Of a stretch of 64,000 nucleotides of DNA, positions 1,953 through 61,880 are shown in pieces. Every line of letters begins with the position of its first letter. The first letter of the stretch is position 1. The notes beneath the pieces were generated by a model. The model did no database searches and was not told the origin of the DNA. It worked only from the letters and a program-made list of their open reading frames with translations. This DNA is from Botryllus schlosseri. Its lineage: Eukaryota. Location: positions 25,978,001 through 26,042,000 of the forward strand of contig CM119371.1 in assembly GCA_051294905.1 (NCBI GenBank), given 5' to 3'. The position numbers were made by a program, and so were the translations under genes.

Positions 1953-2080
1953 CGGCCTAATGCATTGAGATCTTGGTAAATTTGGGGTACCGGGCTTATT
2001 GAACGCCTTGAAATCTCAATGGAGGATTGCACCGTGTGTTGATTGATCAGAGAGAAGCAGACATGGTGGTACCTGTATGA

Positions 2081-2758
2081 CAGGGGTGGCCAACCTGCGG
2101 CTGTAGAAGCAAATTTGTGCGGCCGTGGACACGTAATTCAATTAGTAGGTGTTGGCGGCCGTCGACGTATAATTTGAATTTACGAATTGACTCCCGATTT
2201 CTCGAAAGATTTTAATTATTCTTGAAAGTTTCTCGTGCAGTGCGCGATTCAATGCGACTTTATTTTTCGATTTTGATATAGTTGCGCACTTTGCAATCAG
2301 CGCCCCACAGTACAGTTGCGAACAGATGCACCACATATAGAAATACCAACTTGGAATCGTGTTCTCCTCACTATATCGACAATCCTGACGGGAGGTCAAG
2401 ACATGCAAAGAACAGCATGCAACAAAGTGACTAATAATAATTGGCCTGCCCTGACCGACTCTCCACCAACTCTACCGGTGAATCTGATCACATGGGATGA
2501 GAAATAATATGTAGAACTACTAATTTTAATGACGAAATTCATGAATGTATCTGAAAAAATTTTCGCGCTTGGCGCAACTATGAACAGCCTACATTATTTA
2601 ATAGATTAGTACGGAGTTCGCCGGAAATGGACATAGACACTTTAACATGAGTATTTGGCGTCCTGCTAGTTCATTACGACTATTCCCTGGAATGCGGCCG
2701 TAGGCTACATGAGTAGTCGAAATGCGGCCGTGACTGGCAAAAAGATTGGCCACCCCTG
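2081..2758 (+). mobile_element. hAT MITE (CAGGGGTGGCCAA termini)
   Basis: TIRs CAGGGGTGGCCAA / TTGGCCACCCCTG; 8-bp TSD CTGTATGA/CTGTGTGA. A second copy lies inverted at 41361-42004. Confidence 0.9.
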
Positions 2759-23858: not shown

Positions 23859-24912
23859 TAAAAAAACAAGCTCTTTTACTTTGCATATATAGCCTTCAAA
23901 GCCTTGGAATTATAACAATTAGGTACCGTGCAAAGAGTTCGTTCAACTAGCTTTGGTAACAGCTATCTAGGCGACATAGCGTACATCACAAACATAAATA
24001 ACCGATTAGCTATTCTCTGCGAAAAGATATAGTATAGACAACGATGTTACACGTTACTCATCGCTGTTCGCCGATGTGCCATTTACAAATATACAATACG
24101 TTCCTCGCAATTACAATACGCAGGGATGAAATGCTATTGAAATACTCGCAATACTGACAAGGTTCCGAACACGGAAACAAGGCCTCCTAAAATCGAACAT
24201 AGTAATGCGACCAATTCATGAGTTGACAAATGCGTCCGCCGTTCTAATCAAGGATCCTATCTAAACAAATATTCTAAAATCAAAACAATGCTAGCGATAA
24301 AGAATTTTTCACTGTCCAAGGCGACGCCAACTTATATATCTGGTATGAATTTCGTATCCATGACCAATGATCGTGCGGTAAGCGAATTCCAATTTCCATT
24401 ATTACAAAGGTAGAGAACTGCAGTATGCGATCTTGTGACAACAGCCAGCAAAACGAAGGATATTTTGCTTATCAAAGCTAGTGCTACATGTCACTAGCAA
24501 AAAGATGCATATCGGCTTAGAGGATTTTCCGAAGCGGAATCCGATTAGCGGGGATGATGTTGAGTGAGCTACATGTACTGTGCCATATATCTCTTTGATT
24601 TGAAGCAGCATGAATTTTCATTATAAATAATATCAGATTTACAGGTCTTTCAGCCCCCGAAATCTTTTCAATAACCCATAGGACGACAGAGGGCTGTCAT
24701 TTTTCTGCAATATTGAATTTTGCTACTTTAAATACCTATATTCTGTACTCCTCACCTCAAATGTTCTATCACGTGACCTGTTTGATGATTTCTGGTCTCT
24801 TCCAACCGCTTCTCGTTTTATATGTTTTCTGATCCAATCACCAAAATATTTGGCAGTCGCAGAGCACTGTAAGCGTGGCCACTGAGAATAATATACTTTT
24901 TATCACGATCAA

Positions 24913-25497
24913 GGCGAGGCGAGCAAAGGCCTGGGGCGCGGCAAGACGGCTGCATTGCCTCTTCCACTCAAGTGCCTCACCCCAGCTCAAGACCCGCATT
25001 TTCCGTGCCACTGTCGAGCAGGTTCTTCTCTACGGAATAGAAGCACTCACGTTGACAGAAAAGCTGGCTAAGACACTTAACGCCAACTACGATGCACTCC
25101 GTCGCTACGCACTCGGCATCCACCACCCGGAGCACATATCCACCAATGCTCTGCGCAAACTTACAAAAACGGTCCCATGCCGTTTGCTGGCTGCTGAACG
25201 ACGCTTCCGCCTAATCGGTCATCTAGTGCGGCATCAAGACGATCAACCAGCCGCCGCCATCATCAACCACATTCCGACGGAGCCATATGGCGCAGAGGTG
25301 GCTGGAATAGAACCACATGGCGCTCGACAATAGAGACCGAGCTAGCGCAACGCGGGCTTTCGCTCGAAGACGCCCACGACCGCCCACGCTGGAGGCGCGT
25401 AACAAGGGCCCAAAACGGATTATCTTGATGTTCTTTTGTTTCCTGTTTTCTTTTGCCCTTTTATTTAATTATTTAATTGAAAGTCGATATATATATA
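24913..25497 (+). mobile_element. 5'-truncated non-LTR retrotransposon (RTE-like ORF2 C-terminus)
   Basis: Translation FRATVEQVLLYGIEALTL...RRFRLIGHLVRH...(frameshift)GGWNRTTWRSTIETEL...HDRPRWR. T-rich 3' UTR, (TA)n tail and 12-bp TSD TATCACGATCAA (24901-24912, 25498-25509). Confidence 0.88.
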
Positions 25498-28400
25498 TAT
25501 CACGATCAAACTGAATCGTATGTAACTTCAATTATGGTGGGTCGGGTTTTACCATATTTCCGTGATTTAGTCGTGATGAACCATATTTGGATTAGGTTGA
25601 CGATACAGTGAATATTTTGTTTATATGTTATGAGAGCATAATATTACTTGATCGTTACCCCGCCGCGGTGAGTTGGACGAGGCTGGATACATTTTGTCGA
25701 TATTCGGTATGGTATTTGGAACAAATACTCGCTTCCAGAGTCTACCTGATTCATTTTAATTTGATTAACCTAAAAATGATCCGTATTAAACTTTGATATC
25801 ATATTATACGAAACGAATTACGGGATTATGGAATCGTAGCCACAAAATAGCACTGTGGTAGAGTGTCCAACTTCGCGATCGCTATCGCGTGATCTGAGCG
25901 AGTCAGACCAAAGAAGTGCTTGTATTTATCATTTCTGGATAATGTGTAAAGGGAGATCGTAGTTTACAGTGGATACCTGGGAGAAAAAATAGGCGTATTT
26001 TCCAGATTTACACCATAGCCCAGGGCGAACAGCCAACAACCGGCACTTTTAGGTATAATATTTTATTTTAACACCCAATCGAATGGATGGAAACGGGTCA
26101 AATGTACTAATAACATGGAGATATATCCAAGTGGTGTCGTGTATAGGATACTGTTTTCATGTACTGCCTGTTCGCTCGTACTTGGGCGTGAAATGCTATA
26201 CTACATCGCTTGGATATTATATCTTCAGAAGAACTTGGGTATCTCACCCGTTGTCGCCCACTGGAATGTGCGTGAAGGAACAATTTTGTATCAAAAAGTA
26301 CTGTTCATCGGATTTACCCCCTGAGCAGTCTGATGAACATCGGCAAAATACACGATTAACTTTTACACTTTGCTGACTCGACAACCTTGCTATTCCATGG
26401 TCCAAGCACCCTGATGATGCAGATGCAAATGAATTGCCTTCAGTCCTTCCTCCCTTACCGCTTACCCCGTATCTTGATGTGAGAGCAAACGCGCGCTCGC
26501 ATGAGTGTCTCATGAATATTGATTTCGATATCAAGACCTCACCGCGAGTCTTGGAACTTATAACACCCGCTTTTATTTAACTCCAAAGTCTTATCGCCTG
26601 CTATAAAGTAGGCGTCTCGGTAATACCGAATGCAATTGCATTAAAATGCAGTGAAAAAGTTCAATACTTTGCTATTTATACATTCGCTTAATATGCAAGA
26701 TTGTGTGTTCTATATTCATCGAAACTTATATGAATTCGGATAAATTGTTATTACGTTACTGAATAGTTGTCAGGCGGCTGCACAAGGTATCCTTGCCAGC
26801 CTCGCAGATGTGATAAGCGAATTCGGGACCTGTGATACGCAATGGCAGAGTTAATATTTTCAAATCTAAATTATTGAGATTTAAATCTAAATCCAAATCC
26901 AAATCCAAATAAAGATTTGACTGAATCATAATTAAGATATAGAATTGCTGACATATATTTGAAATCTACCCGAAAGTCGTTCGAAAATCTTAAATGATAT
27001 TGAAGATTACTTGTCCCTGTCCACGTCCGTGTCCAAATCGAAATTCATGCATATACCTGGCCAGTACGGTACTATGACTGAGTCAAGTCAACATTGGTAA
27101 ACATCAGCACATTTTTAGCCCTGTGTCACGATTCACAGAGCTCGAATTAGTTCACAAATCAGATGTTTTCCCGCACGCAATAGCTCAGTCGGTATGAGTC
27201 ACGCCAATAAAGTTACATCATCGATTGCTTCTATTCATCACAACATGCAACCCTTGGACAAAGAGTGTATGTCTTGAGCTGGCGAGTGATTCCCATGCGC
27301 ATTATGAATTGATGGAGGTCACAAAAGTAGCCGGTCATTTTACATTGATAGTGATGTTTCTATACCGTTTAAGCAACCCGATGTGACACTACCTATTCTG
27401 TTTATGAAATTGCACTTTTTAGGCAAGTTCTCTGGTTTCATTAGATTGCGGTGCATGGTAGCTACGCTACATCTGTTTGTTCATTTCACTGATCAGTCAT
27501 GTAGAACTGACTGTAAGGTGTAGTTTCATATACATTTCATGTACATTCCAGCGTTAGAAGTAATCACCCAGAAACGGTAGCGCTGATGGCAATCAACAGA
27601 ATCCAACTTGTTGACATCGTGTTCAGTAATATTAGACAGCGGTTCAAGTTGAGTCCATAATCAGGAGTCGGTTTATTATCTTATCTACCTACAGGCTATG
27701 GTTCCTTGAAAATGGCTGTCTGACTTCGGCTCAGCTGATCGAGTTGAATGACGTAAAGCGCACGTCATCCATGAGTTATTTCAACAATGTGATGACTCGG
27801 CTTCGCCGTAGTATAGCTGCGGTAGGCATGTGTCATGAAGCGCAAGTGACTTAGCATTCCCGTACAGCCGAATATATATATCAATTAACCTCGTGCATTA
27901 TTGATGAAGTTGTGTCTGACAATGGTTCTACATAACTAACGCATGTCCAGTCCATGTCCTACGACGGCTATGATTTATGTATTTGGAAGCAGCATGGTAT
28001 CAGTCGCAACACACTGGCATGAAATTCATATCGTTATCAGAGGCCGCAAAGTCATTTTCAAAGTTTTATGACAGTGGCCTAATCTACAATTTCTCTGCCT
28101 ATATCGCCCCGTAAACGTTCAGTAGTGCGTACGTCGTACGTGTGTGGTAGGGTAGTCCATAAAACAGCATAAGTTACTTGTTTTTTTAGTCGCTTTATTG
28201 ATTATGATTGCGCGTCAAAGAGTGAGCAAGGTATCTCCATACTTCTTGCTAATATTAGACTTATTATTCAGACAACCTACTATCGCAATTGACAATGTCA
28301 AAGTCAATGTTAATTCGTTCTAGTAAAGTTAGTGCAGGATCGGAGCCGTGTCTTGGTAATTGGTATCCAGTGCACGACTTATCAAGATATATATACTGTT

Positions 28401-34793: not shown

Positions 34794-35757
34794 ATTCCCA
34801 TTATTCAAAATTTGGCTTGCCGGGCAGCGCCACGACAAGTTAATCACCAATGCATAGGCCTTGTGATACTATTTCGTGCGTCCTTGCGTTCCCCATCGAC
34901 TGAAATCCGTTACATTGTTCGAAACGGTATAGTGATGAATGACAGTGATATCGAATCGGCTTGATCTTCGCTAATGGACACTGTTTTTTTGCAAAATGTT
35001 GTTATCCTCTTCGCCACGCTTACGTAACATGTTTCTTTTCTGATACAATTGATGTAATCAGCTGTGAGCGTCCTTGATAAGCCGCTAGCCAATCGAGGTT
35101 GGGATGGAGTGTAATCGATGGTGCTGTGGAGGACCTTGTTTATCGGTTCATATTGCTGCAAAACACCGTGTTATTTGTTTAGGATATCGTAATGGATATC
35201 AGCTGTTTGCGGAATCGCATATTCCAAATTCATTTTTAACCAAGCTTTACAGAATGCTCAAGGTTCAGTTATAAGTTAACATCGAGTACTTTTTGGATTG
35301 GAGTTAACTATTCGAGTGCAAATCATTGTCAAGTGACAGACGTCGCATGCATAGCATGACAGTTGAAACATGTGCCGGATGTGCCCTTTATGTAAGACCA
35401 ACGAAATATCAAGAAATTAATTTGCCCGCCAAAGAAATCTCCTTCACCCAGTTCCGGATCATCGAATGTAATTTCTTTGTACATGCTCATAATCACGATA
35501 CAACCCTCTGTGGCAATGGTGTGATTCGCAGAAACAATGTTCCAGCGAACTTGTGCATTTCACAGCCATGAGTTGCATACATAAAGACTGCCATGCCAAC
35601 ATGGAAGTATCGAAAGGATCATTCTCGTTGATAAGATAATTCTTAGTTACACCGTTACGTATATGTTCGATACTAGAGACAATCGACTAGCAGTACTCGA
35701 CTCAAGTCATCAATATGAATTTATGAATTCTCTATTCGTATTAGAACAGGGGTTACC

Positions 35758-40514: not shown

Positions 40515-40520
40515 TTTAAT
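40515..40520 (-). terminator. Putative polyadenylation signal (ATTAAA) of peptide gene A
   Basis: About 90 nt downstream of the TAA; the same hexamer occurs at the equivalent position in gene C (52013-52018). Confidence 0.5.
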
Positions 40521-40606
40521 ATATATACATGGTAGAGATCTACGTGCTATAACAGTCTGCTATAGATAGTCCTTGATGCCGTGATTTTGTCCGAAGCTTT
40601 GTAATG

Positions 40607-42241
40607 TTAGCCATGTCTGTAAGAAAAAGAAAAGACGCTGGTTCTCGTAAATCACTCAACTAAAACGCTGAGACGGACTACATTTCTAAACATTCTCTGT
40701 TTCGTATATTCAGATAAGTCAAGCCATTCGTTCCAATTCATATCAAGGATGCTTGATGATAATACCATAAAAACACGAAACCTCGTCCAATTATGATGTA
40801 GTCAGCAGTGGCCGACCATAAAAATATATGTTAAAACGCTCTACTTTGTTACTGGTTCATTTTCATGTTAATTCGTATCGTCACGAATCACCCTTTTCTC
40901 CGATGCCTATCGGAATATTTCCAAATCTTCAATTGATCTTCATTTGAGATTCGGTTATACGTTCGTTACCAACACAATGCATCACAACACGGTATATATA
41001 TATATATATATATACGGGTTGCCCGACATATGAGCATGCGACACAATGGAAAACGACAGTTCAGCATGGAACACATCAGCATGCGTCACTTCAGCATGTG
41101 ACTGTATAACCCAAAAACTTACCCTAACCCGAAACATAGCCTAACCTAACCTAACCTAGCCTAACCTAACCTAAATCCTAACCCTAACCCAACCATAAAC
41201 CTAACCTAACCTACCCCTAACCCGTAATTTAACCCACATGCACATGTGTCGCATGCCAAATTGTCGCATGCCGAAGTGTCGCATGCTGTAATGTCGCATG
41301 CTCATATGTCCACGGACCATATATACGGCGATAGTAGCAATGGTGGATTACAGTCACGAGAGGGGGGAGGGCAACCTTTGTGCCATTCACAGCCGCATTT
41401 CGGTAACTCATGTAGGGCTACGGTCGCATTTCAGGGCATATCCGTAATGAACTGACTGGACGCCAAATACCTATGTTATACTGTCAATGTCCATTTCCGG
41501 TGAAAGTCAGGATTAACCTATTCATTGATATCGGCTGACTATACTCACCGAAATGGCGAGTGGTCAATGTACATGTTATGAATTGGTACGTGGGAATAGC
41601 TATTATCGCTCCATGCGCGAGAAACTTTCAGATTGACGGATGAATTTCGTCACTAATGTTAGTAGTTTCATATATTACTATCAAACATTTATCCTTTCTC
41701 ACCCCATGTGATCAGATTCACCGGTAAAGTTGATGGATATGGTGTTTGCGTAACTTTCGGGCAAGTTATAAATGATGAAGGATCCTCGGGTGGGCTAATT
41801 GTTATTAGTCACTTTGTTGCATGCTGCTATTTGTTGACATCCCATGAGGATAGTCGGAATTTCAAGATAAATCAAAATCTTTCACCAAATCGAGAGTCAA
41901 TTCGAAAATTCGATTTGCATGTCGACTGCCGCCAACACATACTAATTGAATTACTTGTCGACGGCAGCACAAATTCCCTTCTACGGCCGGGTTGGCCTCC
42001 CCTGGTCATGAGAGTATTGAACTCACGTTATACTTTCACTAATAATGCACTTTCCATTGATGCAATCCGCCATTTCAAACCAGCCATATTCACAATCGCT
42101 AGCAACGGAACACTGTTCTGCAAAAATATACGGCTTGACCAGACAAACATGGTATCTGGCAACGGATAATTCCTTACCCGCCGTTGTAGCCTGAAACATA
42201 AAGAATGCAACGGATGCTACGAATACAGCGATCAGCTCCAT
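40607..42241 (-). CDS. Peptide gene A: 54-aa secreted four-Cys peptide precursor (coding exons 42241-42178, 42117-42027, 40616-40607)
   Basis: Spliced product MELIAVFVASVAFFMFQATTA|EQCSVASDCEYGWFEMADCINGKCIISESITHG*. Introns are GTAAGG...TTTTTGCAG (60 nt, phase 1) and GTGAGT...CTTTTTCTTACAG (phase 2). All splice sites and exon lengths (64/91/10 nt) are identical to paralog C. Confidence 0.88.
41016..41318. mobile_element. Merlin-like MITE with a (CCTAA/CCCTAA)n core, in intron 2 of gene A
   Basis: GG termini, imperfect TIR (GACATATGAGCATGCGACA), perfect 8-bp TSD ATATATAC; absent from the gene C intron. Confidence 0.8.
41361..42004 (-). mobile_element. hAT MITE (family of 2081-2758) inserted about 20 nt into intron 2 of gene A
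   Basis: Colinear with 2081-2758; TSD GTCACGAG/GTCATGAG; empty site in gene C (TTTTCGTGACTGGTATCC). Confidence 0.88.
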
Positions 42242-42428
42242 ATTGTTCAGCTTCTACGTTTTCACACCTCAATATATCTAAAAACAGTAACATATGCCAT
42301 ATCAGTAAATACTACAGTGGGCGCAGAGGCTCTAGAGGCTTTGGATTCTTAGCTATAAAAATTATTTCGTATCATTCTTCAAATATTATCACGTTGGTAT
42401 CAGCAGACCTGTTAACGTCTTTAAATTA

Positions 42429-42476
42429 CGAAGACATTAGACGCATGAAATCAAAAGTGACTAATTGATATATAAT
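42429..42476 (-). promoter_or_regulatory. Putative core promoter and short non-coding first exon of gene A
   Basis: TATATA-like element, TCA initiator-like site and TTC|GTAATT donor (42429). The acceptor TTTTTAG at 42278 lies 36 nt before the ATG. The layout is conserved in copies B and C. Confidence 0.5.
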
Positions 42477-42835
42477 CAGTAGTCTACATTGCGATGCAGT
42501 ATAATTCGACATGAATTAGTCACAGCTTACGATCAGGGGCCATTAGTTATGTGGTGGAAGTGTTGAATAAGTTTAATGTAACCCTCATAGCTGAGTAGCC
42601 TGAATACATGATGTACTACACATGGATGGTGATACCGTTCCGTATTATAATCCGACATCTTCCTCATGCTTACGAATCACAGAACTGTGCCAACCGTATG
42701 TCCTGGTAAAAGGCAGATCTGCTATGTGCTAATATTTTTTATAATTTTCATGTAGAAATACCATTCCATATCTGGTACTGTAAATTACTAGTAATCAAAT
42801 TCACATGGAGTATTATTCCTTCATGTCATTCCAAC

Positions 42836-43181
42836 GAGAGTAGAGCAACGAGAAAATTTTCAACTTTTCCGAATTAGATTATAATTAGAATTATAACTAT
42901 AAAGTTTTTTCCAAATTAGATTAGAGTTAGAATTACTGAATTCGCGAAAACTCGGATCAAGCACAGTTCACATCAAGTCATATTAGTTCATTCTCATAAG
43001 AGAATGGTGAGTGTCTGTATAGCAAGCTTGGCTTTTTTCGCGCTATGCAGTTCTCCTATAGCATTTCCAGGATAACAGCATAGAAACATTTCAAACATTA
43101 GATTAGAATTAGACTATATTACCGGCTTTTGCTCTAATTGGTGTAATTAGTCAACTAGAATTATCTAATAGTCAAACAGTG
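42836..43181. mobile_element. ATTAGA-repeat-rich insertion shared by cassettes A and B (about 45963-46540) and absent from C
   Basis: Flanked by ATTCCAAC direct repeats in A. The flanks join directly in C near 53415-53425. No clear TIR. Confidence 0.6.
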
Positions 43182-43355
43182 ATTCCAACCGAGTTAAGAT
43201 TCAAGTACACGACCAGATTCATAGAAATCGTATATTCGTATCTGATTCAAATCGAGCTAAAATTTTAAAACCCAGATTGGCAACTCTGAAGGAGAATCGG
43301 CGTTGAAGTTGTTATATCCGCAACAATGAGTGATTTGAACACAGCGCCTGTGTAT

Positions 43356-43745
43356 TAGTGCGGAGTGGATCGACAAATTCTCTGGTCCGGCTCCGGCCGT
43401 ATCAGGAAAAGTACTGATCCGGCTCCAATCCGGTCCGGCCAAAAATGTAGAAGTCCGGCCAGAAATCCGGCCCTACTCGGTACGGAGGTTCCGTGAATTG
43501 ATAAATATGCCTCGTCTATGTTCACACTGCCTTGGAGGTTATTTACGTGTGGTTGGTTGGTAGTTATATAGTCATAAAAGTCATGCTTATCCATAAAGAT
43601 TCTGGCCGGATCAAAAAAGTAGTGATCCGGCTCCAATCCGGCTGTGGCCGTAACTGAAAAATACTGATCCGGCTCCGATCCGGTCCGGCCAAAATTGTAA
43701 AAATCCGGCCGGATATCCAATCCGGCTCCGGTCCATGCTCCGCAT
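43356..43745. mobile_element. MITE-like insertion with TCCGGCTCC/ATCCGG subterminal repeats, specific to cassette A
   Basis: Interrupts CACCTGTG(A/T)ATGCGCGCC, which is continuous in B and C. Imperfect terminal inversion (TGCGGAG / CTCCGCA); TSD not resolved. Confidence 0.6.
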
Positions 43746-43820
43746 GCGCTCCCGATCGGCAGATAAAGAAAGAGAACGGCTAGATAACCATGCAATTCTT
43801 TCTATACGGAGACTAATTAG

Positions 43821-44425
43821 TAGGGAAAGTTTCTGCTGCACTAAAATCACGAGAAAGTTGTACTCAATTTTAACAAAAGTTGCAGTAAAAAGTCGCATTT
43901 ACAATTCTTTAGAATTATTAGGGTATGATATACTAGAAAGGTGATTTTGTATAGCCTAATAGTTCAAGATTTGCAGTATATCTGATTATTTGTTTTCTTT
44001 CTTCACTATTCAATCGATCATGTATACACTTTTATGTTATTTAGCTTTCAAGCCTACATGGCAGCATTTCGCTATCAGCTCCTGTAGAGCTGTCAAATTC
44101 GGCACTTCCCCATTTCTTGCTTGCAAGCCATTGCGTCGTAGATAGCATTGAGATGCAGATAGTCCATCACATAGCTCTTTTTTTAGGCAAATCAAAGAGG
44201 GAATCATACTAGAAATAATTTTATAGCATGTTTTTTATATCATTCGTTTACATTTTGCGCAATACTTGATAAAATCTGCAATAAGACGTTGAATGAAAAT
44301 ATAGAAAATGTTGCACTATAAAATTCCTCCAAGCAGCTTAAAACATCATGGTACATGTATTTTGAGCATTTAGGAAGTTCGCGGCAGCTGTAAAAAAGTT
44401 GCAAAAGCTGCAAAAACTTGCCCTA
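43821..44425. mobile_element. hAT MITE (TAGGG(A/C)AAGTTT termini), specific to cassette A
   Basis: TIR TAGGGAAAGTTT / AAACTTGCCCTA; partial TSD CTAATTAG/CTAATCAT; empty site in B (GACGAATCATCC). A further 3' fragment lies at about 47460-47635. Confidence 0.75.
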
Positions 44426-44429
44426 CTAA

Positions 44430-44975
44430 TCATCCTTTTCCCCATCCTTACTTAAGACTGGGAATTACTGGAGGAGAGGATAACAATTTTCAGTTTCGTT
44501 CCAATACGGTTCTCTCTGTGCATTGTTCTGTGATATTTACTTCCGTCGTGTCAGGCTTTCGAAAAGTATATCATCCTTTAATATGTTTAATAAACTGTGG
44601 TAAATATAGATGTTTGTTTAATGACATTATATTGACATCACAATCCCGACGCCAGCCACTCCTCACCAGATTGACCAATTCAGGACGAAAATATACCCGA
44701 ACTACCGACACATATCCAGTATCCATAAACGAGAATTGTGCCAGCGGGAGAAAATAAACAGAGCGAGAGAAGCCAACATGTTCTCGTTGAGCAGCAGCGA
44801 TCGCAACATCGCTTCCCATTGGTCCTGGCCGCCAGATATTGTTGCACGCTCCGATGCTGACAGACTCTCGTTTTGCAGTAAATAGTCGCAAACCGTTCGC
44901 GCGTATCAAAACGACCGCAGACGCAAACTTCAAAGGTAAGGTCTTCGGAGCGGTTTTGGTTGCGCCCAGAATCTA
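44430..44975. repeat. Far-upstream block of the triplicated cassette, copy A
   Basis: Colinear with 46790-47335 and 61259-61880. It contains ATTGG (CCAAT box) in all three copies and TTTTGCAG...AAAG|GTAAGG in A and B. Confidence 0.85.
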
Positions 44976-45314
44976 GATAAGGGGCGGCCAACCCGTGGCC
45001 CGCGAGAAGGTTTTGAGTGGCCCGCGAGGAAATTATCAAAACATAATTACTCTGGTAATTTATTGTGAACTCGCAAGGTCTATCAAAAATTTGATTGGCC
45101 TGACCGGGAAATCTGGGATGTTGATAGCTAAAATATCAGCTACGACGCATGAACGTAGCCAAGGGCCAGCCACATTTTCTTAGATATTCGTATATCGCCT
45201 TGAAGTAGAATATTTCGCAGATTTATTTGATTTTAAATTTTTCTTCGACCTTCACACCATTTATTGTCACTCGAATTCTGGCTTTTAGTATTGGTACCCT
45301 CTTCAGAATTGAGT

Positions 45315-45573
45315 CTAACTATATACTACAGCGATCAGCTTCATATTCAACGTGTTCACACCTCAACACACCTAAAAATATAAACATAGGCCATGCCAGT
45401 AAATGCTACAGTGGGCGCAGAGGCAATAGGCAATAGGCTTTAGATTGTTAGCAATAAGAATTATTTCACCGCATTTTTCAAGGATTATAACGTTGATACC
45501 GGCTGAACAGTTAACGTCTTTAAATTACGAATACATTTTAACATATGAACTCTAAAATTGATCAGTTTATATG
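45315..45573 (-). pseudogene. Peptide gene copy B: promoter and first codons only (MKLIAV then divergence, stop at 45317-45315)
   Basis: Upstream region colinear with A and C (CATATAAA, GTAATT donor at 45528, TTTTTAG acceptor at 45372). ATG at 45344; homology ends near codon 7, and exons 2-3 are missing. Confidence 0.82.
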
Positions 45574-46789
45574 TATAATATCTAGTGTACATTGCGATGT
45601 AGTATAATTCGACATGAATTAGTCACAGCTTACGATCAGTATGTAATGTATGTATGTAATGTATGTATGTAATGGAAAGTGATGAATAAGTTTAATGTGA
45701 CCCACATAGATGAGTAGCCAGAATACGTGATGTACTATAAATGGATGGTGATTCGTTCGTGATACCGTGCCGTATTATAATCCGATATCTTGCGCGTGCT
45801 TACGAATCGTTAAACTGTGCGAACCTTATGTCCTGCTAGAATTCAGGCCTGCTCTGGGATAATATTTTAGTAATTTTCATCTGGAAATCCAATTACGTAT
45901 CCGGTACTGTAAATTACTAGTAATCAAATTTACATATAAGATTATACCTCGATGATATTCTAAATAGAGTTTAGGGATTACAAAATCTTCGCTTTTTCGA
46001 AATTAGATTAGAATTAGAATTACAGTTGCACTTTTTTTATTCGAATTAGACCGGAATTACTATTATAGCTACAAAGTTTTTTTTTCAAATAAGATTAGAA
46101 TTAGAATTACTGAATTCGCGAAAACTTGGATCAAGCTCAGTTCATATCAAATTATAGTTTATTTTCCTTGGTTGGTTGGTTGGCAGTAAAATTTGAAATT
46201 TATTTTTATTAAATTTAAAAATTTCAATTGGCTCCAAGGCAGCCCAGGCTGGTTGGAATTGGGTCAGATTTGGTCTGCAGCCTATTGTAGGCAGCCTAAC
46301 AATTTAATCATTGAATCGCCAGAATCCGGGGGAAAAATCTTACTTTTGAGCAACCACCCTACTGTACGACAAGTATGGTTTTTTTCGCACCATGCAGTTC
46401 CATAGCTTTTTCAGGATTACCAGAAGTTACATTAGAATTACATGAATAGAAACATTTTCCACATTGGATTAGAATTAGATTACCGACATTTCATTCTAAT
46501 TACTCAAATTATGCAACTGAAATTATTTAGTTGTCCATGTCCTGTTCCAATCAAGTCAAGATTTAAGCACACTACCAGAGTCGTAGAAATCGTAAGTTTG
46601 TATCTGATTCAAATCGAGCTAAAATTCCAAAACTCGGATAGGCAATTCTGAACGAGAATCGGCGTGGAAATCGTTATATCCGCAACAAGAAGTGATTTGA
46701 CTACAGCACCTGTGAATGCGCGCCTGGTTCGGCAAACAAAGAAATAGGATGACTAGATAACCATGCAATTCTCTCTCTACAGAGACGAA

Positions 46790-47335
46790 TCATCCTTTTC
46801 CCCATCCTTACTTGAGACTGTGAATCACTAGAGGAGACGATCACAATTTCCAGTTTTGTTGCATTGCGATTCTTATTGTGTATTGTGCTGTGATATTTAT
46901 TTTTGTCGTGTCAGGCTTTCGGAAAGGTATATCATCCTTTATTATGTTTAATAAACTGAGGTAAACATAGATTTTGTTTAATGACATTTTATTGACATGA
47001 CAATCCCGACGCCAACCAATCCCCACCAGATTGACATATTCAGGACGAAAATATATCCGAACTACCGAAACATATCCAGTATCTACAAAGGAGAATGGTG
47101 TCAGCGGAAAAAAATAAACAGAGCGAGAGAAGTCAACACTTTCCGGTTGAGCCGAATCGATCGCAACATCGCTACTCATTGGTCGCGCCCACTAGATATT
47201 GTTGCACGCTCCGATGCCGACAGACTCTCGTTTTGCAGCAAATTGTCGCAAACCGTTCGCGCGTATCAAAACAACCGCAGACGCAGACCACAAAGGTAAG
47301 GTATACAGAACGGGTTCGGTTCCGTCCAGAATCTT
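46790..47335. repeat. Far-upstream block, copy B
   Basis: Colinear with 44430-44975 and directly contiguous with the B upstream region. Confidence 0.85.
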
Positions 47336-49021
47336 TAACGCTCGGTTTATTAGCATTTTTTATCAGTTCAATGCACCACAAAAATGCGATAAAATGACAA
47401 TGACAGTGAAAGAATCCAGCGATCTATTCACATATAGTGCCAAATATTTCCAGTAAAAAGTTAGTTGCATGTAAAATCGAAAAGAATTTGCAAAAATGTG
47501 CATCGGAAATCAAAGAACGTTGCAATATAAGAATCCTCCAAACAGCCTGAAATACCATACTACATAACTTCTGAGTATTTAGGAAGCTGCCGGAAGCTGT
47601 AAAAAAAGTTGCAAAAGTTGCAAAAACTTGCCCTAATAATGACACTTGAAATAGGCGCAGTCTTCGAACGCATACTTAGTTTCCGTACTATAGGGTGCAA
47701 ACTTTCCCAGCATTACTCTCTACTTCTACTTTACTACAAAACCAAAAGATTAAAAAGTAAGTAGTGATGCTCAAATACTGTTTTGGGAACTAGATGTGAA
47801 AATAGTCTGTCAATGGAGTGAGTACTGTAAATAGTCAAAACAAGTCCCAGATTTTTATTCGTTCAATGACACGATTCGAAAGTGGTGCGGTGATATTCTA
47901 TGTCGAACTCGATAATAATATCATACCAAAAATCACAAACGTCCCCCTAATTTTAGTTCGGACACATGATGATTTCGGGAGGTACTTCCCATGAGCTCCT
48001 CCGATGTTGTTAGATCTGTGGTAAGTTAATGAAAGTATGCTATAAAAATGTAACGTCTCTGTCTGTTAGATTATGTTTTCGTGGAGAGCGTGTGAACAAT
48101 GTACTGAATCAATTTTGACTATGAGCGTTGGAGGACTGGCACTTGCTTAGGCACGTGTTATGCATGGTAACTCCATACTGCAATCTGAAAACAGTCTGGC
48201 ATAAAGTCGTGGTACTGTGAGATCGCATTGCATTTGTTAAATGCTACATTTGTTTCACATCATCACGAATTCTCACTTGTACTACTGTGGACATGTATTT
48301 CTTATCACGGTGAGATATGCGTATGTGCTGTGTAGTTATTTGAGCTAGGCCTAATTGAGGAACAGTGTAATTCGATTCCGATTCGAATGTCCACCGGTCG
48401 TGTCCTCCGAAATATCAGAGAGCTGCTGTGGTAAATCTTCTGGTGAGGAATATCATATTAACTTATCAACGTGATTTGCACCACTCAATTAAAAGAAATA
48501 TTAATATTGATATGGATCACGTCAGAAAAGAATATTCATAGTTGCAATTGATGGGAGCCACGTCAGCCATGGCGGCGGTATCCGCATTCGGCTTCTTCCG
48601 TCTCTAAAGCAGCGTCAGGAGCATGAAACGACGGGCAGCGGCTCGGAACGAGTCCGTGTATATGGGGTTGCCACAGCGGAACAGTGAACCTCGTAACAGT
48701 TTCGGCTGAAGTGTATACGACGGCTTTTTCCCGGCACTGAACTGAGTGGTGCTCGTCAGCAGATGGGTTTTGGGTGACAGCGGTCGACGTGGTTTAATGT
48801 CAGGCTTACAGATTGCAACACCAATGCTAGTATATGACACTGAGCTGTGGGGGCTGTTGCCTTCGACAATTGCTGGATAACAAAAATATTGAGCAGGGTA
48901 TGAACTCAACAGCGTTGGCGAAAATATTCTCGGGTCAACCATCAAAGAGAAGAGGATCAGTGAAAGCTATGCTCCGAGATTCAGATCAATAGCATGACCT
49001 GCGACTATACAGTGTACACAC

Positions 49022-51969
49022 CAGACATGGGGTAATCGCGATTAGTAATCGTAATCGATTACGACGATTACAGCATTTTGAAGTAATCGTAATCGCAATC
49101 GATTACATTCGAAAAAAATCCGAAGTAATCGTAATCGTAATCGACTACTTCCCATATCTAATCGATTTGTTTGTGAAAGAACGATTACTTTTTGTTTGTA
49201 CAAGGACTATGACATAAACTGAATATTCGTGAACAAGAATGAGATAATATACCACGTTAGTGTTAGCACAAACGTCTGTTTTCAAACGCCACTGACTCAT
49301 TATTACGTCAGAAGTATTAGCTCCGCTCGTCATTGCGTAACAAGTATCCACACATAGTAAACAGACGTGCGATGGACATTGTAGTGTGATTGTAAGAACA
49401 CCTCCCGTGGTGTATATCAGGGTATCAATACACTACAGAAGCCGCTACCTTGCAGCAGGATATTGATCACCACTCTGCCTATAGTTTCAAATAGTAACTT
49501 ATGTATTAATGTTTGGTTGTGCTTAGTTAAAAGCAGTTTACCATTGCTGCTTGGCGAGCAGGAGGCCTACGTACGCACGTGCACTTGACGAAGATTCGGA
49601 ATTTTGTACTCGTCGAATAAGACATTGCAGTTTCCACAACGAAGCATTACAAATAAACAGCTGCTGATATATATCATAACCGAGCCGTGCTTAGCCGTTT
49701 CTCGTAACAGCAGCTCGCTTTATATGTATTAAGTTGAAGGCAGAATTTTTATGTTAACCATATCTTATTCTCATATAACTACTTGAAACGGGCGTCAATC
49801 GTTGTTTCACAGTCCGTTACTAAGCATTTGGACCTGCCGCCATAACCATCCGCTTATATAGCCTGGCATGTTAGCGTGGGTTGTAGCTAGAATCAGCAAT
49901 TCAGCCAAAACAGCAATTCCCCTGTCCAACAGTTGGTCAATTTTCAAAAGTGAATTTCGTCAATAATATTGGTCATTGCATTATATTACTATTCATTTAT
50001 AACCTCTATGAGCCCCGAGTGTCAGATTTACCTGTAAAGCTGGGGGACGTAATTCATATTCATAGCATCTGGTATGTTGTTATAATTACTGTATGTTGTT
50101 AATTCGCGACCTCCAGTCCGTTGTATAATCACAAGATATTGTACTCGCCCAAACGTAGCAGACTAAAATAATATCTTTTGTGAGACGCACACACAAATTG
50201 TCATGGCTTTATTCTTTTGTGGATGCGCCGGGTGACATTTGCATTGTGGGCCCAGATCGGAAGGACAGGAGTTATTAGTCCCGCCCACTTAGCGCGGCTA
50301 TTGACAATGGACGAATACCATAAGTTTCGGCCAAGGTATTTCTTTGGTATCACATCCCGTGGAGTTGCGTGTTGGCCGAAACTGCATATGTGTTTTGGTG
50401 TGTTGTGGGATCGTGGCACGGTAATGACCGGCTACGAAATGCCTGTTCCCATAAAATATAGCCTATGTATGTTTTTTCTTGAGGGGAAGAGGTAGGCATT
50501 TCAAACCCAGCTATCTACTGGAGCAGGGGTCACCAACTGTTTTGAAACAAAAAGCTACTTCTTTTGTAGTGTGTTCTGATTATTGCGACGACCGACGGGT
50601 TACCTCGTACTCCCGTCGTTTATCCATGTTAAGTTGGATTTCTTCACTTAGAGTAAGACAATCAGAGCACTGGGCCGGGTTTCCGCCCCTTACCAAGAAA
50701 AAAACGCTCACTCGCAGGGACTCACACCAGCTCCTCCAAGCTCAGTTGCGTTGCTGCAGTGCGCGCAGAAGCGCCGATCTCCGCGTCTAGACTCGGGAAT
50801 ATTAACTATATAGATTCCCGTTGAGCCGCCGCGTGGGCGAAGACAAGCAATGCCCCGAGCGACTGCGTTCGTATGTTCCTTGGCGTCGGCCGACCCATGT
50901 TCGACTGCTGCTCATATGAAACGAGCTTCAACTATCAAATCTCTCATTTGGATATTTGCTACAGCGCAGTGGTGGCCATACGAACGTGGGGGGGGGGGGC
51001 TTGGCGAGACTTACCGGGGGCCCCCTATAAGTATCTATCCGTAACTTATGGGGGGCTTCGCCCCCCAGACCCCTCTTTCGCATCTGTTATTATTATCTAT
51101 CTATCAAGGTTTGGCCAGATGCTGGATTCGGCCATGTTTATTTTTTCATGTGTGCAAAGATACACGACATTAAAACTAAGTAATTCTACCGCATGCAGAG
51201 ACGTGATGATTATCGGGATATGGTACTTTTCTAACAAATGCAGAGATTTGATGATGATTGACACATCTGTACGGAATCCTATTCTTGCTTTACACGGATT
51301 TCCATGTTTATTCGTTATTATCCTTGAAAAAAGCGCATAATCCAAATAGGGGAGCCCTTCGGTCAGCCCCCCCTGGTGACCGCCCACCTCGCCCACCCCA
51401 AAAGCCACCACTACTACAGCGACCGCGGGCGACTCATTTGGTCCGCGTTGGTGACCCGTGTACTAGAGATATTTGAATCGCAAAGCTCGAAAAACATTTA
51501 CAAGAATTAATTAAATTCTCGAAAATGCTCTATAATATGTGTTGGTTTACGAAATACTTTTGAGTCCCCTTCGAGCACGCTCCCCACTCTATTAAGGAAT
51601 TTGGGGCGCGGCAGGTAAAGACCTGGCAATAATGCAAATCGTTGGATGCGATAAATCATCTACTATAAAGTTGGGCAATTGATATATTATGACGTAATAA
51701 GCAAATGACGCATGATGAAGAAAGTTGATATCTCATTAAGCCTTTTCATCGCAATCCTTGTATTGTCTTCCCATATATAATTTAAGATTATAGTCCTAAG
51801 CAAAACAAATGTAATCGTGAGTAATCGTGATTACTTTTGAAATGTAATCGTAATCGTAATCGACTACTTCCTGATTTTGCTGTAATCGTAATCGTAATCG
51901 TAATCGCGTGATTCCGAAGTAATCGTAATCGCAATCGATTACATTCATAAAGTAATCACCCCATGTCTG
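49022..51969. mobile_element. hAT-type element with GTAATC subterminal arrays, inserted just past the 3' end of gene C
   Basis: TIR CAGACATGGGG / CCCCATGTCTG; perfect TSD GTACACAC. The empty site in cassette A lies near 40478-40490. Confidence 0.92.
50524..51460. mobile_element. hAT MITE nested in 49022-51969
   Basis: TIR CAGGGGTCACCAAC / GTTGGTGACCCGTG; TSD TACTGGAG/TACTAGAG. Confidence 0.85.
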
Positions 51970-52104
51970 GTACACACATTGAATACCACTTTGCCATCAT
52001 TGATAATATACTTTTAATTTATGCACGGTAGAGGTATATGCGCTATCACACGTCAATTACGAATAGGTAAATCGCCTTGTGATTTTGTCCTTGGCTTTGC
52101 GATG

Positions 52105-52862
52105 TTATCCAGGCCTGCAATAAAAAGAAAAGTAACTTAGTTTTCGTATATTACTCGATAAATATTGGGTCAGACCAATACTTGATGCAATCTAGCTTTT
52201 CGTTCCAATTAATATCTAGGAGAATTGATGATAATACTATAAAAAAAACACCAAGCTTCGTCTAAAGATGATTTCGTTAACATTAAATTTTGATCCTGCA
52301 TGACAGATAAAATTTGACAATTCCCATTCTCCATACGTATTGCGGGAAAGCTGAGTACTCCTTCGAGTACACATAGGCAGACTTAAATAAACATTGAAGA
52401 TATAACTGAGTCGAACAACAGAATTTTTGAACTAGCTCTTAGATGGTTCCTTTTCATGCTAATTTGTGTTGTCACGAACCCTCTTTTTATTGGATGTCTA
52501 TCGAACAATTTCCGGATCCTCAATTGAACTTCATTTAGGTTACAGACGTACGGTCGACGGTCGTACAAAGACATTTCATCACGGATAGATAGAATTCGAG
52601 CGTTCGTAAGAATGGTGGATACCAGTCACGAAAATAATCAACTCACAAACCCAGGGAGGTATACTTGCACTCTCCGTTGACGCAATGCCGAAATTGATAC
52701 CATTGCCATTCACAATCGCTATAAATGAAACATTGTTCTGAAGAAATGTATAGTCTTGTCAATTCAAACATAGTGGCTGGCAGTGGATAATTCCTTACCC
52801 GCCCGAGCAACGTGAAACATAAAGAATGCAACGGTTACTAGGAACACAGCAATCAGCTTCAT
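52105..52862 (-). CDS. Peptide gene C: 54-aa secreted four-Cys peptide precursor (coding exons 52862-52799, 52737-52647, 52114-52105)
   Basis: Spliced product MKLIAVFLVTVAFFMFHVARA|EQCFIYSDCEWQWYQFRHCVNGECKYTSLGLPG*. Intron 1 is 61 nt with an in-frame stop, so it must be spliced. Intron 2 is GTGAGT...TTTTTATTGCAG. Same phases and exon lengths as gene A. Confidence 0.88.
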
Positions 52863-53043
52863 ATTATTCAGCTTCAACGTTTTCACACCTTAATAAATCT
52901 AAAGACCATGCGACATATGAAACAGCAATAAATATACTACAGTGTGCGCAGAGGCTTGAGAATGTTAGCTTCAAAAAAATATTTATTGAAATCCCACAAG
53001 AATTATCACGTTGATATTATAACCCGGTAACGCATTCAAATTA

Positions 53044-53090
53044 CGAATACGCTATAACGCATGACATATAAAATTGACGAGTTTATATAT
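53044..53090 (-). promoter_or_regulatory. Putative TATA box, initiator and 19-nt non-coding exon of gene C
   Basis: TATATAAA at 53090-53083, TCA with A at 53063 (27 nt downstream), donor GTAATT at 53044, acceptor CTTTAG at 52899, 36 nt before the ATG. Confidence 0.55.
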
Positions 53091-53649
53091 TATCGCTAAT
53101 CTACATTGCGATGTAATACTATTCGACACGGATTAGCCACGGCATGCGGTCAATGTTCATCGCTTATGTATAGCCTATATACACGATGTAGTATGCAAGG
53201 GTGGTGATTCCTTTGTGACAATGTTCCATAATCTAATTCGATATCTAGTGCGCACTTATGAATCATTGAACTATCCCAACCGTATGTCCTTCTAAATGGC
53301 AGATCTGCTCTGTAATGATATCTTCATAATCATCATATGGACATCCAATTCCATATCAGGTATTGTGTATTACTATAGTATTCAGATTCACATGTAAGAT
53401 TATACCTTGATGTCATTGCAATCAAATCAAGATTCTAGTACAAACCCAAAGTCACTGAAATCGTAAATCCGTAACTGATACAGATTGAGTTCTATAACTT
53501 TGAAATTATGATAGACAACTCTGAACGAGAATACGTGTGGAAATCGTCATGTCCCAGACAAATAGCGATTTGAATAGATTATAAAATCTGAAGCAGCACC
53601 TGTAAATGCGCGCCAGATAGGTAGACAAAGAACGAGGATGACTATAGTT

Positions 53650-54310
53650 CAGTGCTTCCCATCTGGCATCTACGCTATTTCCAGTGGGTCGCGAATAATT
53701 TCTAAGTGATACAGTTTCCTTTTTAATTTGCCAAATACGCCAAATACTCAATATTCTCGCGATTAGACTAGTAATTGCACCATTACCTCCTCTAAATTAA
53801 ATTGTTTTTGCGCCCATAATCGCCGCGAGCCACGTTCCCGTGCTCACAATAATTAGTGAACCATATTTCTGTGACAGTCATTTTGTATGCAGCGCGAAAT
53901 TTCACGGTGTGTTATTGTGGTGTGCCTGAGAATTGGATTTAATTCTTTCAGGCAAAGGTTTTCTGAACGTTGATCGGGAAGTGCAGCAATCCCGCTTCAT
54001 TTCTCGTTATAATCAGCAAACAATAGCCATGACAAAAATGTGGAAAAAACCCTTTGTGTTCGACGTAAGAGACTTGGGCTACGCGTTTTTTCGGTTGTAA
54101 TCATCTGTCACGCGTACTAATTATTGTATGTTGATACACTGGTATTTCCGAATTATCGCGCGAAGTCTCGTGTTGGCATTTAGTTTAACTCACAGCTCAC
54201 ACGACGCATTGTGCTTTGAATTACGTTCTCATTAGTTTGATGACCGCTTAATGTGCGTCGCACCATGAAACGTTGATGAAAAGTGGTTCGAAAAAAGTTG
54301 GGAAGCACGG
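53650..54310. mobile_element. hAT MITE specific to cassette C
   Basis: TIR CAGTGCTTCCCA / TGGGAAGCACGG. It interrupts the GACTAGATAACC context that is continuous in A and B; TSD unclear. Confidence 0.65.
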
Positions 54311-57381: not shown

Positions 57382-59252
57382 CAGGGTTGCCATCGACATG
57401 GACCCAAAAATAAGGACAGTCGAAAAATTAAATTAGCATGAAAAATCGTTTTGTGCATACTTTGTCTTTATACGAGCCGTGGCATATCACATTCCATACT
57501 TTCACCAGAAAAAATCTACTCCAGCAACTATTAGTTATTAGAAAGTGCTTCATGGATCTCGCGACAGCTCAGTTCTAGGTTTACCTTTACTTGGGGCCGA
57601 AACAGCACTTCGTCAGCCATCCTAAAAACGTTGGTCTTGACACCTGGGGGATAAACCAAACTTCTTCACCTCGTTAGAGGCGTCAACCACGATGGAAAAA
57701 GGCCGCACACCAAGTTCAGACAAAATCCTTTTTGAGCGTATGGGGCAAAAACTCCAGTATCAATGCTTGTAGTCTTGGTCCTGGCCGAAGAAAACTTATT
57801 TGTAATGTTGGAATCGGGGAATATTGCTTTGAACAATTGCGATGTGCAATCGTTGGTGAGGAATGATTGCTGGTGTTTGACAGTATGGAATGCCCCTGGT
57901 CTGAGGTCGTTGGTGCTGATCGACTTGTGGAAAAATTATTCATCGATTGGCTCAAATTAGTCATCATGACACACTTCTTGTGTTTTGGGGTATCAATATA
58001 AGTTAAGTAGCGGTCTTTCCTGTGGCCTACAGGTTAATGTCACAATTGCAGATATTGCAATGTGCGAAACACTCGCCCTTCAATCTTCGCTAGATACCTT
58101 TGAATCCTCTCTCATAATCGTCACGAAAAACATTTTTACGCCTGTTTATTTAAATTAATCAGATTTAGCCTTATTTGTGGCTAAAACTATACGCGCAAGT
58201 GCAATATAATTTAGAGAAATTTATCAATGATTTATAGCTTTACTACTTTTTAACCAGTGTGTCGACTGCACTGCGCCTTTTTTCACTACACGCAATAAAT
58301 GCTGCCTTCCCAACAGCTTGAGGTTATTGTGCTGTAGACCAAACAGCAGTAACCTGGTATTGCTGTTTACCGCTAAAATGACGTCCGTTACGGTAGCTTG
58401 GTACAGCCGAAACTGCTGTACCACCACCCACTGACCTAACTATCTCACCACTGAGAAGTAGGGCTGGGCACAATGATTCGAGTACTCGAATCTGAATCGA
58501 GTATTAATTTTAATGATTCGAGTCGAGTAGTAAAAGACGATTTTTTCGAGTACTGAAATTATATACGCTTCTCGCCACTGAAAGTTAAAGTACCAACGAG
58601 AATTATAGTTTTTATACTATTTTTCACCGAGGAAGCCTTGAAACCTTGATTAGCCGTGTCGCAGCATACGAGACATAGTACAAAGCTACGAACGTTACTG
58701 GAATAGCATATTTCCGAAGTCGTGATCCTCCGACAACATTGTCAAGAAGTGCAATGAAATCGGTATGGTCGAAAAAATACCAAAGTATCTTTAATGTGAC
58801 GGATACGGGGCATTTTATCCTTTGTGTTGGCATAAAAGGTACATATTTTAACTTGGACGGATTACATTCTGTTGTGACGTCATAATGAGTGATACTCGAA
58901 TACTCGACTCGACTCGACTCGAAGCGTAATACGTGATTCAGAATCGAATCACTCAGGTACTCGATTTTGCCCAGCCCTACTGAGAAGTCAAATCTTGTGG
59001 TGTGTACGTCACGAGAGTTCCTTTCATTTATGATGTCATACAATCTCGATAAAAGCATAATTTTAGAATATTATGCAACATAGATACCAGAGGAAAACGA
59101 TGGAAGTTCTGTAGCGGTTGAAAATAAGACAAAATATAGACGCAAGTCGAAAATAAGGACATTTCTTAGAAATAAGGACAGTTGAGTTTTCCAAGACGTG
59201 GCCATTCAAAATATGGACAAATCTTAGAAATAAGGACGGTATGGCAACCCTG
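57382..59252 (-). mobile_element. Inverted sister copy of the 10961-13848 hAT element with decayed transposase 5' part
   Basis: TIR CAGGGTTGCCAT at both ends; colinear with 10961-13848 once inserts are removed. TSD only partly matches (CTTATA vs CTTATATA). Confidence 0.88.
58459..58979. mobile_element. hAT MITE (ACTCGA/GATTC repeats) nested in 57382-59252
   Basis: TIR TAGGGCTGGGCA / TGCCCAGCCCTA; perfect TSD CTGAGAAG; empty site in the 10961 copy (about 11228-11240). Confidence 0.93.
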
Positions 59253-60960: not shown

Positions 60961-61258
60961 CCATAGAGGTATGAAATTGAGAAAAAAAAGTTGAACCACA
61001 TTACCATGCTGAAACCCTCTCAATGTAAGCAAATTTATTGAGAGGGCTGTTGTTGTTTTTCATGAACTAAACGACTAAACTGATGTTGCAGCAATCAGTA
61101 TAATCTTAATTTAATGCATACCGGTAGAGTTTATTCTCGCGTATGCTTGAGCTTGACACATGTGCAATGTGCATTGTGCTTTTCGGAGTTAAATTAAATT
61201 AGCTTTCCCCCAATACCCATCAAGCTAATCTCTAAGGTTGGGAGCCACTGCTCTACAG

Positions 61259-61880
61259 ATACTAATCAGTCTTTTCCTCATCCTTACTCGAGACTGTGAA
61301 ATATACTATAGGCGGATAACTATTTTCAGTTTCGTTGTAATACGGCAGTCCGTGCATTGTGCTGTGCTGACATTTATTTCCGTCTTGGAAGGTTTTCCGA
61401 TGAGTATTTCATTGTTTAATATGTTTCACAAACTGGGGAAAACATATTAGATGTTTGATCAATTAAATTATATTGAAATCGCAATCCCGACGTCAACCAG
61501 TCCTCATGAGTTTGACCTAGTCACGACAAGACGAAAATATACCTGTATTACCGAAATATAACCAGTATCCACATAGATAGGAGAATAATGGCAGATGAAA
61601 ACGTATACAAAGCGAAAAAAAACGCACTTTCCGGTGACCGAAAAATACCCGAACTATATATGTATTCAGAGCAATAAAAATCAAAATACTTTCCCGTTGA
61701 CACCCGCTGATTGCGACATCGATTTTAATTGGTCGCGCCCTCTCGATATTGTTGCATGCTTAGATGCCGACAGTATCTCGTTTTCCAGTTTGGTCGCAAA
61801 CCGTCCAGGTGCATTAAAACTACCGAAACGGCGTTCCAAGATTAGGTCTTCAGGGAGGTTTTGGTTTTGTTCAGAATTCA
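61259..61880. repeat. Far-upstream block, copy C
   Basis: Colinear with 44430-44975 and 46790-47335 but more diverged; resumes immediately after the CTCTACAG TSD. Confidence 0.82.

Follow-up and report, generated by a model that had tools for sequence, protein, structure and literature searches.

Relationship to described peptide families

The precursor of the peptide nasonin has a signal peptide, a phase-1 intron and no propeptide, and its genes are present as tandem duplicates (PMC2853521). Here we describe a gene family of comparable plan on the minus strand of a 64,000-nucleotide (nt) stretch of the Botryllus schlosseri genome (contig CM119371.1 of assembly GCA_051294905.1, positions 25,978,001 to 26,042,000; hereafter the window, whose own numbering is used throughout). 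Three units lie there in the tandem order C-B-A, with start codons at 52862 (C), 45344 (B) and 42241 (A). An initial annotation of this DNA had proposed that the exon for the mature peptide evolves faster than the neighboring intron, under diversifying selection of the kind known from conotoxins and defensins. Our analysis favors, with a probability of roughly 0.68, an account in which A and C are paralogs that function or did so until recently, B is a truncated copy, a scaffold including the cysteines has been held in place, and the apparent excess of divergence in exon 2 stems from a short tail after the last cysteine that was rebuilt by insertions and deletions (indels).

Copies A and C share with nasonin and other short CS-alpha/beta peptides a signal peptide that leads straight into the mature peptide (about 30 residues), a phase-1 intron and tandem duplication (PMC2853521). 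The second half of both products, D-C-x9-C-x-x-G-x-C, is also common to nasonin and to alpha-KTx toxins such as margatoxin and noxiustoxin. However, the known CS-alpha/beta peptides have six cysteines, a CXXXC helix motif and a C-terminal CXC, whereas A and C have a total of four cysteines with none after the fourth (Cys4), a C-x5-C spacing and no CXC. The best PDB sequence matches found with phmmer are at chance level (nasonin-1M, E=0.41; margatoxin, noxiustoxin and alpha-KTx 3.6, E=0.7 to 2.8), and Foldseek comparison of the structure models with the PDB gave nothing below E=2, the best values for the two models being 2.2 and 3.0. Because the fold-defining CXXXC and CXC are absent, we do not file the two peptides under the CS-alpha/beta class.

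A variable mature region combined with conserved cysteine codons also recalls the conotoxins. Position-specific conservation of cysteine codons is a feature of conopeptides, and all four such codons (TGT, TGT, TGC, TGC) are the same in A and C, as originally annotated. On the other hand, conotoxin precursors possess a pro-region, whereas A and C lack one, have a tiny intron 1 and show no sequence similarity to them. Conotoxin signal sequences are strongly conserved, whereas the signal exon of A and C stands at the neutral background of the locus (52/64 identical positions against 596/802 in non-coding DNA, p=0.29), and the CpG observed/expected ratio of the window, 1.05, is not a molluscan-looking methylation signature.

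Legume NCR peptides, like A and C, are encoded by a signal exon followed by a mature-peptide exon, and their four-cysteine members have the spacing C-x5-C...C-x4-C. Chickpea NCR13 is among the weak Foldseek matches, with a TM score of only 0.33. NCRs are, however, a plant family, whereas the window contains relics of animal-type retroelements, and its 60-nt intron is not rich in U; a search with Pfam (Nodulin_late) gave no match, and we treat the likeness as convergent only. The sole Pfam model touched by both exon-2 peptides at E<=1 is that of the short two-disulfide Dumpy DPY module (PF21164). Such modules are repeats within a giant extracellular matrix protein rather than free secreted peptides, and membership was rejected at scores of 12.3 and 11.7 bits (E 0.17 and 0.27), below the gathering score of 27 bits.

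Gene architecture

The elements of the two complete copies are listed from the upstream flank of A to the last exon of C, all on the minus strand.

42242..43420, minus: copy A upstream flank or promoter, the non-coding yardstick, aligned to 52863-53660 of copy C
42178..42241, minus: copy A exon 1, ATG and 21-codon signal peptide plus the base of the split codon
42118..42177, minus: copy A intron 1, 60 nt, GTAAGG...TTGCAG, open in frame
42047..42117, minus: copy A exon-2 core up to Cys4, 51/71 identical to C
42027..42046, minus: copy A exon-2 tail past Cys4, 3/20 identical to C, containing AAGTATAAC
40617..42026, minus: copy A intron 2, with an in-frame TGA inside its GTGAGT donor
40515..40616, minus: copy A exon 3, with the split codon, two codons, TAA (40607-40609), 3' untranslated region and ATTAAA (40515-40520)
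52799..52862, minus: copy C exon 1, signal peptide
52738..52798, minus: copy C intron 1, 61 nt, GTAAGG...TTCAG, with an in-frame stop if unspliced
52647..52737, minus: copy C exon 2, 91 nt, cysteine spacing as in A, tail at 52647-52666
52115..52646, minus: copy C intron 2, GTGAGT...polypyrimidine tract, TTGCAG
52013..52114, minus: copy C exon 3, Pro-Gly-TAA (stop at 52105-52107) and ATTAAA (52013-52018)

Exon 1 is 64 nt long in both copies: the 21 codons of the predicted signal peptide are followed by a single base of a codon that is split by the phase-1 intron. Intron 1, of the form GTAAGG...CAG, is one nucleotide shorter in A (60 nt) than in C (61 nt). Exon 2 is 91 nt long in both; the mature peptide begins at its boundary, its product has the spacing C-x5-C-x9-C-x4-C, and a GTGAGT donor follows it. 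About 1.4 kb (A) or 0.5 kb (C) past exon 2 lies the predicted acceptor of exon 3, with a conserved polypyrimidine tract and CAG. The frame is closed within the first ten bases of exon 3 as x-Gly-TAA, at an equal aligned position in the two copies, which would give, if the predicted splice is used, the C-termini ...T-H-G-stop (A) and ...L-P-G-stop (C), and an ATTAAA lies at +96 of exon 3 in both. Given that the TGA inside the intron-2 donor would stop the unspliced A and C proteins one codon past exon 2, the product would be nearly identical with or without the removal of this intron.

A C-terminal glycine is the usual amidation signal, and with the predicted splice a glycine stands directly before the stop codon in what appears to be a secreted precursor. 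The family would be a lineage-restricted three-exon gene, with a precursor of about 54 residues made up of the 21-residue signal peptide, no propeptide and a mature peptide of about 33 residues ending in glycine, and with two disulfides predicted among its four cysteines. These features point to an orphan family of predicted secreted two-disulfide peptides, probably amidated, whose inferred role is that of extracellular effectors, for example with antimicrobial, toxin-like or signaling activity. If expressed, its members would be orphan small disulfide-rich secreted effectors, a class that yields antimicrobials, toxins and signaling peptides and that automated annotation routinely misses.

Intron 1 of A (42118-42177), being exactly 60 nt long and without an in-frame stop, differs from the closed 61-nt intron of C, and A can therefore also be read as an unspliced 72-codon open reading frame (ORF); retention of the intron would yield a 72-residue protein with a fifth cysteine. 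Intron 2 of A carries a repeat insertion of about 650 nt (41364-42009), 17 nt past the donor and absent from copy C, which matches window positions 2077-2756 in inverted orientation at 72-84% identity. It also holds a (CCTAA)n microsatellite of 15 units (41140-41222). The complement of this unit, TTAGG, is the arthropod-type telomere unit.

Divergence between copies A and C

Our comparison of A with C reproduced the counts on which the proposal of accelerated evolution had been based, namely 52/64 identical positions in the signal exon, 46/61 columns in intron 1 (with one indel) and 54/91 in exon 2 when aligned without gaps; exon 2 likewise has no clean synonymous changes beyond the two reported, CAG/CAA and AAT/AAC. 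As a local yardstick we used 802 non-coding positions aligned between A and C (distal flank, proximal flank and intron 1) in a MAFFT alignment of the whole unit. This pool is 74.3% identical, which corresponds to a Jukes-Cantor distance of about 0.3 (non-coding divergence K of 0.29-0.40). Taken as one ungapped block, exon 2 is more diverged than the pool (p=0.002). Its core, which runs from the acceptor to Cys4 (71 nt), is by contrast identical at 51 positions (72%; p=0.37 against the pool), and 32% of the 71-column windows in the upstream flank are equally or more diverged; with indels allowed, the whole exon is identical at 59/80 positions (74%; p=0.89). The statement that exon 2 is less conserved than intron 1 is hence true only by virtue of the 20-nt tail, through which the ungapped alignment had been forced.

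The comparison with the co-duplicated flanks and with intron 2, which had been put forward as a check, likewise disclosed no excess of change in the core relative to the upstream flank (76% identical in its proximal and 69% in its distal part) or to the end of intron 2 (73%). Identity is 81% in exon 1, 77% in intron 1 and 65% at the start of exon 3. The duplicated unit has thus drifted by about 25% throughout its flanks, signal exon, intron 1, cysteine core and exon-3 region. An exon-below-intron signal in an ungapped hand alignment can stem wholly from a short segment restructured by indels, and claims of accelerated evolution first need this contrast to be drawn with an indel-aware alignment and a local non-coding yardstick.

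The anomaly itself is confined to the stretch between Cys4 and the donor, where A and C agree at only 3/20 positions, below the 25% expected for random sequence, and where all six tail residues differ. MAFFT aligns the 9-mer AAGTATAAC of A with AAGTATACC of C, with 8/9 matches at an offset of 11 nt. The shared 9-mer lies directly after Cys4 in C and directly before the donor in A, which introduces two 11-nt gaps, and its bases are out of frame between the two copies. A shifted 8/9 match arises in 0.5% of shuffles of the tail (permutation p=0.005), and indels are common in the flanks, where 990 aligned columns contain about 16 gap events. This suggests that the tail was restructured by paired, compensating 11-nt indels. 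That exon 2 is free of indels, as initially reported, is correct for its total length of 91 nt in each copy, but fails for the tail, with its 9-mer displaced by 11 nt. Two such compensating events would have rebuilt the tail so that the nucleotides common to both copies fall in different frames, leaving exon length, splice phase and the terminal glycine intact. Frame-sliding of this kind, if true, would be a means of diversifying the terminus of a peptide while the exon phase and the amidation signal stay.

Scaffold retention and tests of selection on the mature peptide

A neutral simulation at the observed divergence retained the ATG, the open frame and the four cysteines in 0.7% of trials, and gave probabilities of 0.17 for keeping the six splice-site bases and 0.11 for the absence of indels from 135 coding nt; the neutral expectation for four identical cysteine codons is 0.028. 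Given that the ORF with its four cysteines so rarely survives neutral drift (about 0.007), the scaffold is constrained, and the stop codon and the poly(A) signal, placed alike in exon 3 of both copies, also speak against simple decay of the genes. The held scaffold consists of the frame, the splice sites, the four cysteines, the motifs E-Q-C and S-D-C-E, one tryptophan and an N-G in the last loop. Selection would have kept these elements, with the remaining residues changing at about the neutral rate.

Rates of non-synonymous (dN) and synonymous (dS) change and their ratio (omega) were computed per exon by the NG86 method for the single pair A and C, in which no more than 10 to 15 sites are synonymous.

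Exon 2, 29 in-frame codons: dN 0.587, dS 0.529, omega 1.11
Cysteine core: dN 0.382, dS 0.286, omega 1.33
Signal exon: dN 0.204, dS 0.272, omega 0.75

Other estimators of omega scatter from 3 to 4, with a maximum-likelihood value of 4.3 for the core, a spread attributable to the small number of synonymous sites. Of the 20 differences in the core 18 are non-synonymous, and the core dN of 0.38 is not below the non-coding K of 0.29-0.40 even with the invariant cysteine codons included. By these codon comparisons the non-cysteine residues show no apparent purifying selection, which fits conotoxin- or defensin-like evolution. The dN/dS check proposed with the initial annotation did not, however, bear out positive selection, in that omega is not significantly above 1 in any test (core non-synonymous versus synonymous change, p=0.40 by Fisher's test; core non-synonymous change versus the non-coding pool, p=0.25). 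The near-neutral rate of change outside the scaffold seems equally compatible with relaxed constraint and with diversifying selection, which a single sequence pair does not separate.

Alternative explanations

Several points weigh against the account of a held scaffold with an indel-rebuilt tail. That two separate 11-nt events should agree in length would be coincidental, except where selection acted on frame or length, and the two tails were compared only with each other. The yardstick includes promoter sequence and comes from a gap-optimized alignment, both of which inflate its identity somewhat. The structure models of the two peptides, described below, are single-sequence models that are discordant in the N-terminal half. 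Finally, the genes are known here from DNA alone, through one full pair of sequences.

Among the alternatives, the one that survives best, though we regard it as tentative and somewhat unlikely, is that an interacting partner drives replacement in the mature peptide by diversifying selection while the cysteine scaffold stays frozen, as in conotoxins and defensins. The preponderance of non-synonymous differences in the core speaks for it, together with the NG86 values above 1 for core and exon, the maximum-likelihood estimate, a core dN at or above non-coding K despite the invariant cysteine codons, and the replacement of all six tail residues. Against this, the tests, with so few synonymous sites, are non-significant, the exon-below-intron contrast arises artificially from how the tail was aligned, the signal exon has no unusual degree of conservation, and no kappa-B-like motifs occur upstream, which is weak evidence. 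Of the accelerated-evolution reading there remains, accordingly, the part that describes genes for secreted peptides with a cysteine scaffold and unconstrained non-cysteine residues, whereas its exon-versus-intron evidence is lost with the tail. Diversifying selection is plausible for such genes and unproven here. Appreciably less probable still is the fuller version, in which this would be an unannotated, lineage-restricted family of amidated two-disulfide peptides whose loops are truly diversifying and which acquires new C-terminal tails through compensated frame-sliding indels.

It is also improbable, in our estimate, that the ungapped alignment is correct and that nothing but point substitution, at an extreme rate, set the two tails apart. 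Each exon 2 measures exactly 91 nt and each tail encodes nine residues ending in glycine, as this would predict, but for a match of 3/20 K would have to exceed 2, over six times the neutral value of the locus. The probability of three or fewer matches by point substitution is 5e-8 at the neutral K and 0.005 even at K=1, about three times that rate, and the shifted 8/9 match (p=0.005) speaks in the same direction.

Even less credible is the view that there is no gene, or that A and C are dead and their ORFs are chance features of a neutrally drifting duplicated non-coding or repeat unit. The equal divergence of coding and non-coding DNA with omega near 1, the lack of any homolog or transcript in the databases searched, and the gene-poor character of the window with its many transposon relics are all consistent with this view. 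Yet the joint retention of the ORF, ATG, four cysteines, splice dinucleotides, exon length, stop and poly(A) offset is very unlikely under drift, with the simulated probabilities of 0.007, 0.17 and 0.11 not yet counting exon 3.

Recent gene conversion homogenizing exon 1 and intron 1, which would make exon 2 seem fast and had been named beforehand as fatal to the accelerated-evolution reading, is very improbable, and the signal exon and intron 1, standing at background identity, do not indicate it. The identical runs of 22 and 19 bases that might suggest it coincide with the signal peptide's hydrophobic core and with the splice donor at the exon 1/intron 1 junction. The two segments together (98/124, 79%) do not differ from the upstream flank (550/742, 74%; p=0.27), which itself has identical runs of 14-15 bases, the downstream exon-3 region is at a similar level, and a recent tract would approach 100% over at least 100 nt.

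Searches for relatives and structure models

The family has no recognizable relatives in the collections searched. Searches and folding were run with the exons individually and with the read-through ORF of A (42026-42241, minus strand). Apart from the sub-threshold Dumpy DPY scores, Pfam gave no match for either exon-2 peptide at E<=1. A word-index protein search with the read-through ORF returned no candidate, and HMMER found 0 matches at E<=1e-3 among 1.84 billion representatives, using as query a three-row alignment of the read-through ORF of A with exon 1 and exon 2 of C. Metagenome contigs contained no exact match to the conserved 22-mer and none related to the read-through ORF, and a literature string search for six peptide motifs found no match.

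Single-sequence AlphaFold2 models of the two peptides are of moderate confidence (predicted local distance difference test scores of 75 and 76) and contain a small beta-hairpin; those of A and C share this C-terminal hairpin around the N-G turn.

Copy B and the tandem array

Copy B is represented by the following elements.

45326..45344, minus: copy B, truncated, with the initial 19 nt of exon 1 (ATG included)
45345..46790, minus: copy B upstream flank, about 78-81% identical to the flank of A and about 73-75% to that of C

Homology of B to A and C stops after these 19 nt of exon 1, and the window has no runs of N. By flank identity, A and B would be more closely related to each other than either is to C. 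About 1.4 kb of promoter-like flank and these 19 nt survive in copy B up to the abrupt loss of homology, and the copy is bracketed by repeats of about 550 nt (44425-44974 and 46785-47334) that are 87% identical, with a third copy at 61251-61877. Upstream of the genes there are no kappa-B sites, and the GATA sites found there are not conserved in copy B.

A six-frame scan for the cysteine pattern, together with searches for the signal exon and the donor motif, recovered no further copies in the window besides A and C. An ORF piece at 35520-35615 (plus strand) has the spacing C-x5-C-x11-C-x4-C; no acceptor or signal exon was seen nearby, and it is probably a chance occurrence.

Around the array, a CCGG-rich 42-nt tandem repeat (GATCCGGCTCC...) occupies 43603-43731, about 1.4 kb upstream of A, and has no counterpart upstream of C. 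A 2.7-kb segment separates exon 3 of copy C from the downstream flank that it shares with A. Clusters of short repeats of the GTAATCGTAATCG type lie on either side of this segment, at 49045-49157 and 51807-51951, and may represent the terminal repeats of an insertion.

Genomic surroundings

The window has 41% G+C, and its features, including the CpG ratio given above, agree with an invertebrate whose germline DNA is not depleted of CpG. A human origin was rejected on account of this ratio, the 60-nt introns and repeat types that do not match. Rfam and tRNA scans of the window were empty. It contains almost no conserved coding sequence: among 66 ORFs compared with Pfam, only a hAT dimerization domain near 3.7 kb was recognized. 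A degraded DUF4371 (hAT-like) transposase relic is present in two copies of opposite orientation, at 10935-12084 (plus) and 57716-59058 (minus), which bracket most of the window; the best database relatives of this relic are eukaryote-like contigs in ENA long-read metagenome assemblies, at 50-75% identity. The 3' end of a non-LTR (long terminal repeat) retrotransposon, with the C-terminus of the reverse transcriptase and an AT-rich tail, is present at 24875-25500 (plus). A 1-kb Logan contig from run SRR25569773, a run that probably stems from the same or a sister species, encodes a protein 90% identical to that of the retroelement ORF over 84% of the ORF.

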